Origin: Oopsacas minuta
Taxonomy: Eukaryota > Animalia > Porifera
Assembly (NCBI GenBank): GCA_024704765.1
Contig: JAKMXF010000304.1
Span: 273,909 to 337,908 of the forward strand
DNA length: 64,000 nt
Direction: 5' to 3'
Of this stretch, positions 4,560 through 19,242 are shown in pieces (position 1 is the first letter of the stretch; every line of letters starts with the position of its first letter). Made by a program: the position numbers and the translations under genes. The notes beneath the pieces are model-generated. The model did not search any database. It had not been told where the DNA came from and saw nothing but the letters and a program-made list of their open reading frames with translations.

Positions 4560-6139
4560 TTCTCGGACAGGGCTACGACAATGCAGCAAATATGTCTGGC
4601 AAATATATTGGTACTCAAAAGCATATAATTACCGTCAGTCCTTTATGCTTATACTCTCCTTGTGGCTGCCATTCATTAAACCTGCTTAGAGCGGATTCTG
4701 CTGAAAGCTGCACCGAAGCTGTCACCTATTTTGGCATGGTTCAAACAGTCTACAAACTTTCTCTAGTAGTCCTCACCGATGACACATACTACAACTCCAC
4801 ATTGCATGCTGTCTTCATGGCTTGTCCGGAACAAGATGGATGGATCGTGCTGCTAGTGTACGGCCATTCGCAGCTCATCTATCTGGCCTAAAAGTGGCAC
4901 TACAACAGTTCCTATCTCTGAAATTACTCCGGAGACAACCACCGATGTAAATGGAGTCATAAAGTACGTGTCATCGTTCAGCTGCGTTGTAATGTCTTCC
5001 ATATGGTCAAAAGTCCTAGTGGCAATTGACCAAAGAAATCAAATCCTCCAAGCAAGAAAAGCAACAATTGATGTTGAAGTGTCCAACTTAAAGAGTCTAC
5101 TTAAAGACTCAAAAGAGCTGCGGGAGAAATGGTCTTTGATTTTAAGTGAATGTACTTTGGTGGCCAGTGCTGCGATCATTCCGGCCGAATTTCTAACCAA
5201 GCGTAAAGAAAGCGAAGAGCTTTTTTACAACGAACCACAAGATGAGAAAATGGCGGAATCAACTGCAAATGATCAGAGTGCTGAGAGCGAGGAGGAACTT
5301 GCATTCATGCAAAATGTAATTTACGTGATTGTGGATTCTGTTATAACAGGTCTAACAAAACGCTACGATTCCGCAAATAGCATCAACGATCTCTATAGCT
5401 TTCTTTGGCGATATTTGAATTAATCGGAAGACCAAATTATTTAGGGCTGTGAAGTCTTTGGAAAGAAGTATTCTGATGTTATTTCTCAACACGATTTGAG
5501 AGAGGAGGTGATTCATCTTAAAGCCATCCATATTGCTAATTTTGGAAATGAATCTTTGTGTCCTCTAAATCTTTTGAACACTATTAGAAAATTTAAGTTA
5601 GATGAAATATTTTGCAATATCTGTACTGCATTGAGGATGTTCTGCACATTGCCTGTTACCGTTGCTTCCGCCGAACGTTCGTTTAGTAAGTTGAAACTCA
5701 TCAGGACCTTTCTGAGAAGCACTATGAGTCAGGGATGACTGAACGATCTCGCAATATTGAGCATCGAGGCTGAACTTGCAAAGCGTATTGACTTTCAAGA
5801 CATAATCAATGATTCTGCTATGAGGAAGGCACGCAAAGCTTTCTGTAAATTACACTGACCGTGAATTTGTGTATTTTTCCGTTTGTAACTACAATAACCC
5901 TTGAAGTACTAGCTTTGTAGTATTAGTTTTTTCATTTATACTACTTAACATCATAAACTCCATAGCTATATAGCAATAGGCTATTTGAAATTCATAAAAT
6001 ATAAGAGTAAATAGGATTGTATTTATTTAAATTTTTTAATATATATATAATACGAATGCAATAGTTTGCGTTTTTTTATTCACTTCACGATAACGGAACA
6101 AAATATCAGAGGGGCCCGCTCGCGCTCTCGACGCCCCTG
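4560..6139 (+). mobile_element. 5'-truncated hAT (ZMYM1-like) transposase pseudogene with right TIR
   Basis: GQGYDNAANMSG, SPCGCHSLNL, GTRW and LPVTVASAERSFSKLKLIRTFLRSTMSQ (hAT dimerization domain), stop at 5856-5858. Right end reads GCGCTCTCGACGCCCCTG at 6139. Confidence 0.85.
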
Positions 6140-6948
6140 ATCGGAACAACATTAATTTTGGAACTTGAAATGCGAAATTTGGAATCAGCCCACTCGATTT
6201 CTCTAGTATAATCTTATAAACAAAGTTGCTGGGACTATTTACAATGCTTTTACATTATATACATAAACAACACACACACATCCAGATTACTAGACAATAT
6301 CATATTTGGAATCAGCATACTCAAATATGCTAATGTAGTAATTGTTTACTCCACATATACCACCAACAGAAGGTTAGGTTATTCACTAAATCGATCTAAT
6401 TATAAAAATGCAGAATGTATACTTAAAAGGCGATAAATTAGACTATCCGTGTCAACTCAAGTTTTCTTAGAACTAAACGTGTGCAAAATGTAATCACTTC
6501 ATGGTTTGGCCAAATGCAAACTAAACATGGAAATATTACTTCATCATGAATGTAAAGAAATATCAAAATTTCTAGAATTTTGATATATTTAGAATTCATA
6601 ATACTAGAGGGATAAATTGACCAGATTACTAATTACAAGTCACTTAGAAGCTCGAGGATTATCCCACAAGGCCATTAAATGGAATTTCGATAGAAAATGG
6701 ATAATAAAAATTTAATATTTATGCAAAGAATACCTCAAGATACGTAGGCCGACCCAGTCGCATAGCAACCAAAAGCATCAAGAAATTATGTTGTAGAATT
6801 ATAGAGCTGCCTTGAGCTACTAAGCTGTCGCGAAGCGATCTGGTGTGGGTATACCGATTTCGAGCTAATGAAAATGTCAATACGTGCATACAATCAAGGA
6901 GATATTAATTAAGTAGATAGACATCCCAAGTTAGCGCAAATAACACCT

Positions 6949-9874
6949 CACAGTGTGGCAAAAAGGCGAAAATGAGGGATTAGCCAAATTGTAACTTCAA
7001 ATCGATAATATTTGTATTATACTTATATATGAAATCGACCCCGTACATTTCACTGGACAAGTCAAATTTTTAATTAACCCACTCAAAATATGTGAGGATG
7101 ACGTCATCACTAAAATCACTAATTCATAATTTTAATAGATTATCAGGGATTTATAAAGGGTATCCTGTTCAGATGTTTCAAGCATGCTATCTTCGTTTGA
7201 TTTAGCCTTTCTAATACTTTTGTGACGATTTAAAACCAATACAGGGTCACTGTAGCACAAAAGTCTGACTAAAATATCACGAAAGTTGTCAGAAAAGGAT
7301 GTTTTTCTTGTTAAATTTTCTCTATACCTTCTGACATACTTATTGCAAGCCTCTAAACACTCTTCAGAAAGGTTTTGTAGTCCATAACCATGATTATAGC
7401 AATAAATTATTTGAAAACAATGAGCAAGCAGTTTATGAAGAAAGGGAGAGATGCTTACCCAAGGAAAGTGATTCAAAACAATTTCATACGTTTCCTTGCA
7501 AAGATTTTCAAGACCATGACAATTAATGTGGTCTTTGCTGTTAACTATCCTCAAAATCACCGAGAGGTTGTTTTGAATCATTTTAAGGGTTGGTTTATCA
7601 ACTGGGTTAATAGTGGAGGTAGCGCATCTGAAGAAATCTCTTTTATCTCGAAAACAGTCTCGTGCAACATTGCCAGTTGTTGAAGTCCCCCCTTGACTAG
7701 AAGGAATATCGATTTTGATACTACATTTGGCTTCTATAATTGATCTTATTCGTTTCAAAGAATCCTGTACTTTTGTGCATGTAGGTGACCACTTTTTACA
7801 ACCTGCGTCTAAGTGATATATGAGTAACATATATCACCTAAAGACACAGAGATACGCATGCAATGGAGAAGCTGCTAAGATGTTTATTTCGGAAGTAGGG
7901 TGGTGGGTAATGCCACAGCGTTTTTTGGAAGGTAGGGCAAATATTTCGTCCTCATTAATATCGTCAAATAGTTGATTAGCATCAGCAATGTATCTATTAA
8001 TTGGAAAACCTGATCTGGCCGACTCTAAACTATTGATTTCCTTTCCTGTGGCCGTGCAAAGATGACATGATGCACCACCCGCTCCATCTAATAGACCTGC
8101 CATTTTGGTATCAAATATAGATCGAATAATTTCTACTTTTATGTGACGATTTTCAACTGCAATTCCTTGTTCTACAATTAATTTAGTTGCGGGATTTATG
8201 AGTGTATCCATAATAAATTTAACGTTTTCGTGATTTTCCTTCAACGCAATTAAGCAGACTGCTCTGAATGAAAAAGGTGAATTGGGGGAAGTATTGACGT
8301 ATAATGAGAAACCTGTGTTATCTGTTATACTGAGAACTTTAAATCCGAATAGAATAATACTGTGTGTACCTAAACCTAGATTTGAGTTCACTTGGTTGTA
8401 AGAATTGTGTGAGCCTGATCCATCTAGACCGTCTGCAATTCGAACTGACAAAGGATATTGTGAGTTGTTTACAATGGAATCGAAGCTTAGAAGATGTCAC
8501 TGAATGGTTAGTTCGAGTATTTCGAAATAAGAAACTGATACACCAATAGAGTTACCTTCGGGGTTAGTGACAAATAAAACACTTCGTGAAAGAGAAATTT
8601 CTTGACGGTATTGCGATATTAATTATAGGATGGAAATACGATGTCTTGTTTCAGTAATTTCTTCAACTGTGTGTATTGAATGTTCCAATTTCGAGAAGAT
8701 CTATTATATAACTTGACATAGGTATCTAAACTTACTTTACATTTCCGTAACGTGCCTGTTGCGATTATTTCTTTGCATATACTGGAAGTTTCTCGATCAT
8801 ATTCCTGGATAGAAATTAATTCCAGAGCTAAAGCAGCAACTTTCTTCTCGTCAACCTGCTCCCTTTGGGCAACGAACTGAATATGCTTTAGCAAAACGTT
8901 CAAACGGTTTCGAGCAGCTTTCATTGTGAGTTTGAATAATGGTTTTCTGATCTCTGTTAGATTCTCTTCAATAAATGAGTGCTGCTCAGGGATAGAATCG
9001 ACTGTGTCAATCGACATTTGTGATCCAGAGTTACAAGTAGTGACTGAATAAAACTCCATACCCTCCCAAACATTTAAGTTGTAAATCTTCTGGTAATGAT
9101 CTCTGGATTTTCGAAGATTTCTTAATTTCCAACGAATAGTTTCAAACAGATCATCTGACAAGGAATGAACTTCAATTATCTGACGAGCTGCACCAGAACA
9201 ATTCCAACCATGTGATTTATAAATATCGTATGCTTCTTTTTGTGTAATAAATGTTTAATCCATTGAACTGGTGGAAGGAAGTAATGTCTAGTAAGTATCA
9301 ATAATGGGATAAATAACACAAGTTTGAAATTGAGCCGATCCCAGGGAAATTTGGATTGAAATTCGAAATGGGTGGAGAATGGGGCGCTAAAAATTGTATT
9401 AAATTAAGGGTAGTACAGTACTTTAACATTGTTAAAAATATAGAGGCCCCATATTGTACCCATTTAAAAATCTACCTCTGAGTATGCCGAAATACATCCC
9501 GAAATTTGGTAATTTTCGGGGTTTCGAAAAAGAGTTCTCTCAAAAATTTCTATTAAGTTTGGGAAATATTAATGTTCAAAGTTATGATAGTGAATACTTA
9601 TAAATGAATCACGAATTGAATTACTTGCAAGTAGGCATTTGATTGCATCTACTGCTAGAATTTATGATAACGTAATTATAGTTCGGAAAATGTTTTGAAA
9701 CCTTATAAAATTACGTCATTAGACAATGAGAATTTAAATTCACAAATAGAAGCTGAACCACAGTAAACACAATATAGTTGTATTCTCGACAGACTATTGA
9801 ACAATATTAGAACAATTATAGATAGTTATGAGACCACAAAAAATTTGGCTAATTCTAGATGATGCCACACTGTG
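6949..9874 (-). mobile_element. Transib / RAG1-like transposon with RSS-like asymmetric bipartite TIRs
   Basis: Both ends start CACAGTGTGGCA (6949-6960; reverse complement at 9863-9874). Inner 12-mer ATTAGCCAAATT at 6979-6990 and, reverse-complemented, at 9842-9853. CACCT precedes the left end (6944-6948) and follows the right end after one extra G (9876-9880). Confidence 0.92.
7132..9263 (-). pseudogene. RAG1-core-like (Transib) transposase, about 710 codons, with in-frame stops and at least one frameshift
   Basis: Three track ORFs join into one frame-broken CDS: GLDGSG (RAG1 D600), FDTKM (D708), SCHLCT (C727/C730), SPLHAYL, TTGNVAR, LHKLLAH (H937/H942), SEECLEACNK (E962), C-terminal SDP. 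In-frame TGA at 7834-7836 and near 8500; frameshift near 8620; probable ATG at 9263 is followed by an early TAA. Confidence 0.9.
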
Positions 9875-11395
9875 GCACCTTCCACCAAATACAACATTTT
9901 AGAGAACTTTAATGGCTCTATCACCCAATATATTGTCTAAAAAGATTGTAAGAATGAAGACGTCACCATCATTAAAAAGGTCTAAAATAAACAACGATCC
10001 CTTCAGAATGGAATTTTCTTCAAAGAAATACTTTTATCCAGAATTAAATTGCAGGCAACGAAAATTCAAGAGAAAAAATGAATATAGTTCACAAACACTA
10101 CCAAGCAACTAATTGCTGTTACTAAATAGGTTGTTAAGACATAATATCCTTGCGAAATTGGATTGTCGCATGAAAGTCCACAAGCCTAATACAGAGGAAC
10201 TTCCAGATAGGAGAATCTCCATTAGCTAAACTTTGGAGCAGTTTTCAATGATTCAGGAGAAACTAGCGATTTCCATAATATTATTTCAAGTTGATATATT
10301 AGGGGAGGTGAAGCTGAAAATATTTAGGAAACAGGTGTAATAGACAGAGAGAGAACAGCAGCATCTGATGAAAATCAACAAACATTTTACAAATGAACAA
10401 GAAAGGGCTGGTTTTAGTACAAACTTAGCAGAATCAGGGCCTAGTCTAAATAAAAGTCCTAGAAAAACATCTGATAACTGATCTACAGTACCTCTAATCA
10501 CTTTGTAAACGAAGCACTGATTATGTATTACAATATTCTATAGTAAATTTCATTATAATTACAATATAAATGAAAAACATCAAACGTTTGGTTGGTACTA
10601 AACAAATATCTGATCAGGGCTCTAGCGAGCCAATGGAAAATTAGCAGCTATGTTATGTTAGCTTGGTATTCTACATTAATAGGTAGGGCGGCCCAGGCAG
10701 CACCACATAGGGCGACTCTGGATAAAAATTAAAGTTTGTTCGTGCAGATCATTACAATAGGGGTCCAAACCTTCTTCACAAGTGAAGCCCATTTAACGCT
10801 TTCTCTCTACTCTATGCCATACGCTGCAATACAAACTTTGAGTTCCTATGGGACTACAGACGTACATGAACAAAAAAGGGATAGATGAACCCCAGGTTGA
10901 CCTAAACCACCTTGCATTTAGCATACAACAAGACCCTATAAAATAGACATCATTTGTAGTTGACCATTTCCTTTGTTCTGTGCTTTGTCAGTTATATCAA
11001 GATTAGAGTAATTAGTTTTCAGTAAAAGGCTAATAAATATTCGTCAAATACAACATACTTAACAATAATTATGCTGAATAAATAAACATATAACACAGAA
11101 TATAGATAAATGAGAATAACTTCAATAACTAAGTGAGCGGAGTATTATGATGGTAGTAATAATGCATAAATCAGTACAAATTGACCAAAGTGACTAATGC
11201 AAATAGTAAAATGATTCATCGTTAGAGTTTCACAATAAATGCGTCAAAACAGGTATGCATATGTAAAAAGCAATTCCGGCGAGGAGTCAAATGGACCAAT
11301 AAATATTCTTATGGATTGAATAATTATCTTACCAAACGACAGATAAATAGTACCAATTATCTCCCCCAGAATCTAATCAAATTCGAATTTGAAAT

Positions 11396-19106: not shown

Positions 19107-19242
19107 TATTCAAAAAAATATTTCAAAGTGGCGAAGAAAGTTGCAATGTGTATGTATTACGAAAATATCAAATAATATTCAATCATTCGATGTGTTCGTG
19201 AATATACAATGCACAGTGTGTTTAAGAACCCTATGGAGGTTT

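Follow-up and report, generated by a model that had tools for sequence, protein, structure and literature searches.

A single-gene Transib transposon with bipartite 14/23 ends in the glass sponge Oopsacas minuta, a test system for a candidate RAG2-independent spacing rule

The window analyzed here is a stretch of 64,000 nucleotides from contig JAKMXF010000304.1 (positions 273,909 to 337,908 of the forward strand) in the assembly GCA_024704765.1 of the hexactinellid sponge Oopsacas minuta. Positions 6949-9874 of this window, 2,926 bp in all, contain a mobile element whose ends resemble recombination signal sequences (RSS). With a probability of about 0.85, the element is a degenerate member of a Transib family with a single gene, many copies and a moderately young age, which carries bipartite ends with intervals of 14 and 23 nt and would be moved through the mechanism outlined below.

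The transposase is encoded on the minus strand; the right end of the element is therefore its 5', short end, and the left end its 3', long end. Each terminus begins with a 12-nt outer element, CACAGTGTGGCA, made of the heptamer CACAGTG followed by TGGCA, which is found at 6949-6960 on the plus strand (heptamer 6949-6955) and, as an exact inverted copy, at 9863-9874 on the minus strand (heptamer 9868-9874). A second 12-mer, the inner box ATTAGCCAAATT, is also identical at the two ends and occupies 6979-6990 on the plus strand and 9842-9853 on the minus strand. The interval between heptamer and box comprises 23 nt at the long end (6956-6978, plus strand) and 14 nt at the short end (9854-9867, minus strand; TGGCATCATCTAGA when read inward). 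These counts depend on the position chosen as the start of the box, and the difference of 9 is independent of that choice. The end plan is thus a 12-nt outer element, 9 or 18 nt, and a 12-nt inner box. Spacers of 12 +/- 1 and 23 +/- 1 nt with an A-rich nonamer-like box are not matched, given a short interval of 14 nt, an offset of 9 nt and ATTAGCCAAATT as the box. A first, sequence-only reading of the window had pointed out the heptamer within a shared 12-mer at both termini, the second identical 12-mer at 23 and 14 nt, the 9-nt difference and the non-canonical inner box, and it was right on each of these. When up to one mismatch is allowed, CACAGTGTGGCA has four matches in the 64-kb window, against 0.18 expected. 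The other CACAGTG heptamers of the window (19212, 19655, 24846, 31223, 35479 and 62709) have no inner box, and neither tblastn nor blastn found a second copy of the element in the rest of the window. The heptamers at 19212 (plus strand) and 19655 (minus strand) form an inward-facing pair 444 bp apart, again with no inner box, which is probably due to chance, as eight such heptamers are present in the window.

A MAFFT alignment (A2) of sixteen ends, 5' and 3', gathered from eight informative loci, clarified the relationship between the two ends. It contains one 9-nt gap, located directly after CACAGTGTGGC; the long end thus differs from the short one by one 9-nt insert with consensus AAAWWGGCS, which in the window copy is AAAAAGGCG (about 6960-6968) and is absent from the short end. 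The insert generates a second TGGCNAAA-like unit in the long end. A clean tandem duplication of 9 nt was considered as the origin of the long end and fits poorly, the TGGCNAAA repeat having a period of 8. The two intervals had been described as unrelated beyond TGGCA; after the gap is introduced, however, the 9-10 nt preceding the inner box are partly common to both ends, in 6-7 of 9 positions in L007 and L005. In the window family this likeness is weak (4 of 10 positions).

Among the loci compared, L001, L009, L010 and L011 are members of the family of the window copy; L002, L003, L006 and L007, from three ENA assemblies, have 74-85% DNA identity to it, and L004 and L005, also from O. minuta, stand for other families, with an identity of about 66%. 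The 5' interval measures 14 nt in all nine ends (the window and eight other loci), and its sequence drifts after TGGCA (TCATCTAGA, ACATGTGGA, ACATCCGGA, ATATGGGGA and ATGTGGCGT). Of the 3' ends, all five whose heptamer is intact (those of the window copy, L001, L009, L007 and L005) have an interval of 23 nt; it is 22 nt only in L010 and L011, where the heptamer is already mutated. CACAGTG is also found at the ends of L001, L005, L007 and L009, in which the whole outer 12-mer is conserved, and inner boxes related to that of the window copy are present in the sister lineages, as GTTAGACAAAAT in L007 and AATAGCTAAATG in L005. At the 5' end of L007 the terminal 42 nt align at 88%, next to 585 bp that are unalignable. 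A fixed spacing beside unalignable subterminal DNA indicates that, as judged from these alignments, the spacing is under constraint, and not merely young, in the copies as well as in sister lineages with as little as 66% DNA identity. The 14/23 spacing first noticed in the window copy recurs in every usable intact end of these lineages.

The two intervals behave differently in sequence. The sequence-only reading had proposed to check whether the spacing is fixed with a variable spacer sequence; this holds for the spacing itself and for the drifting 5' interval, but not for the 3' interval, which is kept between lineages as TGGCAAAWWGGCSAWAATGRGGR. In Logan contigs, at a 1% threshold, the 3' end 6949-6991 shows zero variant letters and zero indels. 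By its conservation the long interval resembles a recognized sequence, rather than a variable RSS spacer, and it appears to behave as one. A scan of metagenomes with the pattern CACAGTGTGGCA-N(5-30)-ATTAGCCAAA returned a sole contig (L008, Ga0164293_10019754, JGI), with a 22-nt interval at 4887-4925; it was rejected as a chance match, having no transposase homology and no partner end.

The asymmetry of the ends could also be a historical accident, that is, one 9-bp insertion or duplication inherited from an ancestral 3' end, with a transposase that needs the outer 12-17 bp alone and a box kept for another role, e.g. as promoter or terminator. This explanation draws on the reliance on heptamer and TR2 proposed for RAGL-B elements. 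It agrees with the presence of exactly one 9-nt insert between the two ends, as a single event would give, with the common ancestry of all the sampled lineages, which could have inherited the layout, and with the argument that the RAGL enzymes of invertebrates are "relatively insensitive to TIR asymmetry", TIR being the terminal inverted repeat (Martin et al. 2020, PMC7204232). However, the box is inverted at both ends, so that a one-sided promoter does not explain it, and neither interval has gained indels in lineages of 66-76% identity, where the neighboring subterminal DNA is unalignable. Moreover, the sole two 3' ends of changed length (22 nt) already have mutated heptamers, and the window family is devoid of the C-terminal zinc knuckle, the TR2 binder in BbeRAG1L. 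An accidental origin is therefore considered unlikely.

Full-length paralogues, 97.2% identical, are present at other loci of GCA_024704765.1, namely L001 on JAKMXF010000301.1 and L009 on JAKMXF010000349.1, and their homology to the window copy ends within 1 nt of 6949 and 9874; older copies, L010 and L011, have 88-91% identity. In Logan contigs from the window's sample, the summed word depth increases 10-50 fold at precisely 6949 and drops again at 9874, and several contigs stop at 6947-6949, with flanks that differ from one another. The family clearly has many copies, although Logan depth is not itself a copy number. Over the 3' terminal 42 nt (6950-6991) the word depth exceeds that of the interior of the element 3-10 fold, an excess that points to numerous short non-autonomous elements, or to sister families sharing this end.

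An orthologous empty site is available in a related organism, where a contig (run X5, organism B) joins 6948 to 9881 and reads on as TCCACCAA. The limits of paralogue homology, the depth steps and this site independently confirm the boundaries of the element. Comparison with this site reveals a 5-bp target-site duplication, CACCT, at 6944-6948 beside the 3' end and at 9876-9880 beside the 5' end, as expected for Transib; one further base, G at 9875, separates the duplicated target from the 5' heptamer, so that the site has gained the element, 1 nt and the 5-nt duplication. L009 has a clean duplication, CTCTG, and L007 has ACACA with one extra base (T, about 4079) at the 5' junction. The additional 5'-junction base could derive from an occasional off-by-one cleavage at the short end, which carries along a base of the donor flank, or from a mutation of the junction; a mutated 6-bp duplication, in place of 5 bp plus an extra base, is less likely, since the same pattern occurs in L007. 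The element was thus inserted by cut-and-paste transposition with a 5-bp target duplication. L001 (3339-6258) and L009 (4388-7312), which lie at different loci, share frameshifting deletions (window-equivalent positions 7640-7641 and 7485) that the window copy does not have. These shared frameshifts indicate that copies already broken were mobilized by a transposase acting in trans, and hence that their ends are working substrates.

The coding region consists of one 2.1-kb reading frame broken into three minus-strand pieces. The start of the open reading frame (ORF) lies at 9162-9263, with the ATG at 9261-9263, and encodes the beginning of a predicted N-terminal helix-turn-helix (HTH)-like domain; it is followed by the N-terminal piece of 180 aa (8619-9161), whose last part is frame shifted, by the middle piece of 205 aa (7834-8451), with the catalytic-D motifs GLDGSG and IFDTK and the CxxC motif SCHLC, and by the C-terminal piece of 232 aa (7132-7830), with the HxxxxH zinc motif in FLHKLLAHC and the catalytic-E motif LSEECLEACNK, and with no C-terminal zinc knuckle. 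The region between the short end and the ATG (9264-9841, minus strand) is non-coding, no ORF being present. Pfam returned no significant family for the three ORF pieces, nor for P0248, a product of 307 aa that covers the N-terminal part of the protein encoded by L009 and shares 84% identity with the piece in the window; homology was therefore established through the sequences of solved structures in PDB and through a profile. The C-terminal piece matches HzTransib (6pqn) with an E value of 1.1e-15 and BbRAG1L (6b40) with 4e-4, and the middle piece matches HzTransib with 8e-5 and RAG1 with just 0.16. GLDGSG, IFDTK and LSEECLEACNK, together with the zinc-binding SCHLC and LHKLLAH, all fall within the aligned regions and correspond to motifs of HzTransib and RAG1; thus, the DDE catalytic motifs and the RAG1-type zinc ligands are present, although the reading frame is broken. 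An exhaustive search with the C-terminal piece found 1,578 relatives at E<=0.001, and a profile (A1) built from 20 full-length relatives and the sponge N-terminus matches HzTransib (4e-98), BbRAG1L (1e-58) and RAG1 (8e-45). A distant relative, P0043, passes the Pfam RAG1 family PF12940. The initial description of a RAG1-like transposon thus stands in the sense of a RAG1-core-like, Transib transposase together with consensus RSS heptamers, HzTransib being the best solved relative.

RSS-type heptamers, asymmetric ends, a 5-bp target duplication and similarity to BbRAG1L would also be found in a RAG-like transposon of the RAG1L-RAG2L, ProtoRAG type. This assignment is highly improbable: in 2.9 kb with one ORF a second gene was not found, the score for HzTransib is eleven orders of magnitude better than the one for RAG1L, and the N-terminal non-core region of RAG1 is missing from the protein of the element. 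In particular, no RAG2-like gene could be found inside the 2,926-bp element, where no further ORF of at least 100 aa shows homology. As there is a single gene and no space for a RAG2-like partner, its coding capacity identifies the element as a single-gene Transib DNA transposon, with a RAG1-core-like DDE transposase, and not as a two-gene RAG-like transposon.

To judge by its reading frame, the copy in the window is dead. Codon 3 is a premature TAA at 9255-9257 (MD*TF), where P0248 has a lysine (MDKTF); a private TGA at 7834-7836 ends the middle piece, all the other contigs having C at 7834 (TGG), and three further private 1-nt indels are found at about 8750, 8678 and 8625. All five elements examined are broken, and so are the other copies and relatives that were retrieved.

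Upstream of the DDE core, the protein is predicted to contain segments that bear on the recognition of the ends. Profile A1 aligns to full RAG1 chains starting at the GRPR motif of the nonamer-binding domain (NBD), and it matches the isolated RAG1 NBD structure 3gna with an E value of 0.0054. In the window copy the NBD columns of this profile are occupied by a segment, EIRKPLFKLTMKAARNRL...VAALALELISIQ, encoded at 8805-8954 on the minus strand. The AlphaFold (AF2) model of P0248 has a mean predicted local distance difference test score (pLDDT) of 72.9, with values above 90 in the relevant helices; its residues 104-224 superpose on residues 391-511 of mouse RAG1, which cover NBD and DDBD, with Z 7.8. 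A fold search with the model returned RAG1 or HzTransib in the first 18 rows, the next unrelated rows having Z 4, and the HzTransib structures match it only from residue 175 onward. Both position and fold of the NBD-like segment correspond to RAG1 391-459, with a middling Z and the motif EIRKP. The presence of NBD-like and DDBD-like segments upstream of the DDE core is thus predicted by the model, and the fold match, given its middling Z values, is taken as support and not as proof. At the opposite extremity, the C-terminal tail (...NRHKSIRKAKSNEDSMLETSEQDTLYKSLIIY) has no cysteine and hence no CTT1 knuckle (CX2CX3GHX4C), which is present in the relatives P0043, P0097 and P0079.

By analogy with RAG, HzTransib and ProtoRAG, a transposase dimer would synapse one short and one long end. 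The catalytic core would read CAC and the rest of the heptamer, nick at the outer border of CAC and convert the flank to a hairpin, and the 3'-OH ends would then be integrated 5 bp apart. A dimeric NBD-like module may hold both inner boxes. As one box lies 9 bp further in, either the long end would have to bend or the module to pivot, and the extra 9 bp at the 3' end, slightly less than one helical turn, would be absorbed in this way. The offset would tell left from right, and it may favor short/long pairing and disfavor synapsis of like with like. One short and one long end occur together in each element, and this combination is conserved. A further and more doubtful proposal, which is put forward only tentatively, is that this sponge Transib lineage, devoid of RAG2, enforces a 14/23 pairing rule of its own, with a step of one turn minus about 1.5 bp, by means of a dimeric NBD-like module without GRPR/K and an inner box that is not A-rich.

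Several points weigh against the overall reading of the element and its ends. The length of the long interval may be fixed because it is a binding site, and not through a spacing rule, and the conserved spacing could in part be plain inheritance, the comparison including about five independent lineages from one sponge assembly and three ENA assemblies. L001 has no target-site duplication. The window family has EIRKP where RAG1 has the nonamer-contacting GRPR/K, which some distant Transibs keep, and the Z of 7.8 for the NBD fold is middling by the fold tool's own caution. Furthermore, the predicted N-terminal HTH-like domain could read the inner box instead. In the P0248 model, residues 2-68 form a confident three-helix unit, weakly similar to the TIR-binding domain of SETMAR/Hsmar1 and to homeodomains (Z 3.3-4.0); this homeodomain-like unit, encoded in the window by 9162-9263 and by the upstream part of 8619-9161, is a possible accessory DNA-binding domain. 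If it, rather than the NBD-like segment, contacted the box in the manner of Tc1/mariner transposases, the long end would have an extra site in its second TGGCNAAA-like unit. Such a role is compatible with pLDDT values above 90 over residues 10-50, with the resemblance to the SETMAR/Hsmar1 domain and with the lack of GRPR/K in the NBD-like segment. On the other hand, the match is a weak one to a very common fold and no Pfam family was detected, whereas the NBD-like segment is shared by Transibs in general and can be aligned to the NBD of RAG1. A reading of the box by the HTH-like domain is thus conceivable, though not probable, and recognition by the NBD-like segment is retained here as the working proposal.

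The left flank of the window copy contains a high-copy repeat at 6668-6801, unrelated to Transib, with depths up to 4,900 (run X1) and 14,800 (run X5); in either organism numerous contigs end loosely there, at 6668 and 6706-6710. O. minuta Transib loci are found amid Tc1/mariner-type genes (HTH_48, HTH_Tnp_Tc3_2 and DDE_3), at L004:6202-6537, L009:1-1877 and L005:1469-1783, and in L004 the 3' part of the Transib is missing beside one of these genes.

Among the known systems, HzTransib of Helicoverpa zea, which is active without RAG2, is the best solved homologue. Its DDE core, zinc motifs and DDBD-like region align with those of the sponge protein; conversely, its solved chain (6pqn) has no counterpart for the NBD-like segment, and even where the two sequences align best they are only about 30% identical. 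Vertebrate RAG1-RAG2, for which the 12/23 rule has been demonstrated, shares with the sponge element the consensus heptamer CACAGTG, bipartite signals of two lengths and a predicted order of NBD-like, DDBD-like and DDE core regions. Differently from it, the sponge element is a true transposon with a target-site duplication and without RAG2, its offset is of 9 and not 11 nt, and no A-rich nonamer is present.

Transib ends have been described as a CAC-heptamer, a variable spacer of about 23 bp and a nonamer-like box, and in Transib5 of Drosophila, as well as in Transib2_AG and TransibN1-N3_AG of Anopheles, the 5' end is RSS12-like and the 3' end RSS23-like (Kapitonov and Jurka 2005, PMC1131882). 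The sponge element resembles these families in having a single RAG1-core-like gene, a 5-bp target duplication and ends composed of a CAC-heptamer, an interval and a second box, and its polarity is the same, with the short interval at the 5' end and the interval of about 23 nt at the 3' end. However, those families have 12/23 spacing (difference 11 +/- 1) and an A-rich nonamer-like box, whereas the sponge element has 14/23 spacing (difference 9) and a ATTAGCCAAATT-like box; moreover, its heptamer is extended by a conserved TGGCA, its long interval is conserved and its host is a glass sponge. A hypothesis has been built on these asymmetric Transibs (Yakovenko et al. 2021, PMC8355894). More recently, asymmetric TIRs were reported for every Transib of Subgroup I and for some of Subgroup II, both subgroups having an equivalent of the NBD, and the ends of AanRAGL from Aureococcus anophagefferens were found to contain 13-bp and 10-bp elements, 4 or 13 bp apart (Tao et al. 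2022, PMC9435367). AanRAGL thus shares with the sponge element the 9-bp offset and the plan of outer element, gap and inner element, which in the sponge is 12 + 9/18 + 12; it differs by the presence of RAG2L, and the sequences of the elements are unrelated. With respect to AanRAGL and the Subgroup I and II Transibs, the sponge family is devoid of the CTT1 knuckle and of the GRP motif. A four-part logic is also known for PflRAGL-A from the hemichordate Ptychodera flava, which has a heptamer, TR2, an asymmetric spacer with a 10-bp offset and a nonamer (Martin et al. 2023, PMC10462144), corresponding to the heptamer, TGGCA, 9/18 interval and box of the sponge element. PflRAGL-A is, however, a two-gene RAGL-A element with a GRPR/K NBD, a CCGHC tail and an AT-rich inner box.

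Since the literature already contains Transib and RAGL elements with asymmetric ends, a 9-bp offset among them, the sponge element introduces no new principle. Particular to it are the 14/23 numbers, the box that is not A-rich, the conserved long interval, the absence of GRPR/K as well as of the zinc knuckle, and its occurrence in a glass sponge. In a search limited to a library of papers, none linked Transib with Oopsacas or had Transib in sponges as its subject. The element thus adds a host phylum and a well-documented case, including copies, sister lineages, an empty site and dead copies mobilized in trans.

The origin of the 12/23 rule is debated between a "Transib seed" (Yakovenko et al. 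2021, PMC8355894) and an origin in RAGL-A elements (Martin et al. 2023, PMC10462144). With its fixed 14/23 layout, its predicted NBD-like segment and its lack of a zinc-knuckle tail, the sponge family offers a clean, RAG2-free system for asking whether the enzyme reads the length asymmetry, and it is a good natural test system for a candidate RAG2-independent spacing rule. If such a rule were at work, discrimination of signal length would be independent of the canonical nonamer contact, and length discrimination of the 12/23 type would predate RAG2, since the Transibs of the earliest-branching animals would already have had it.

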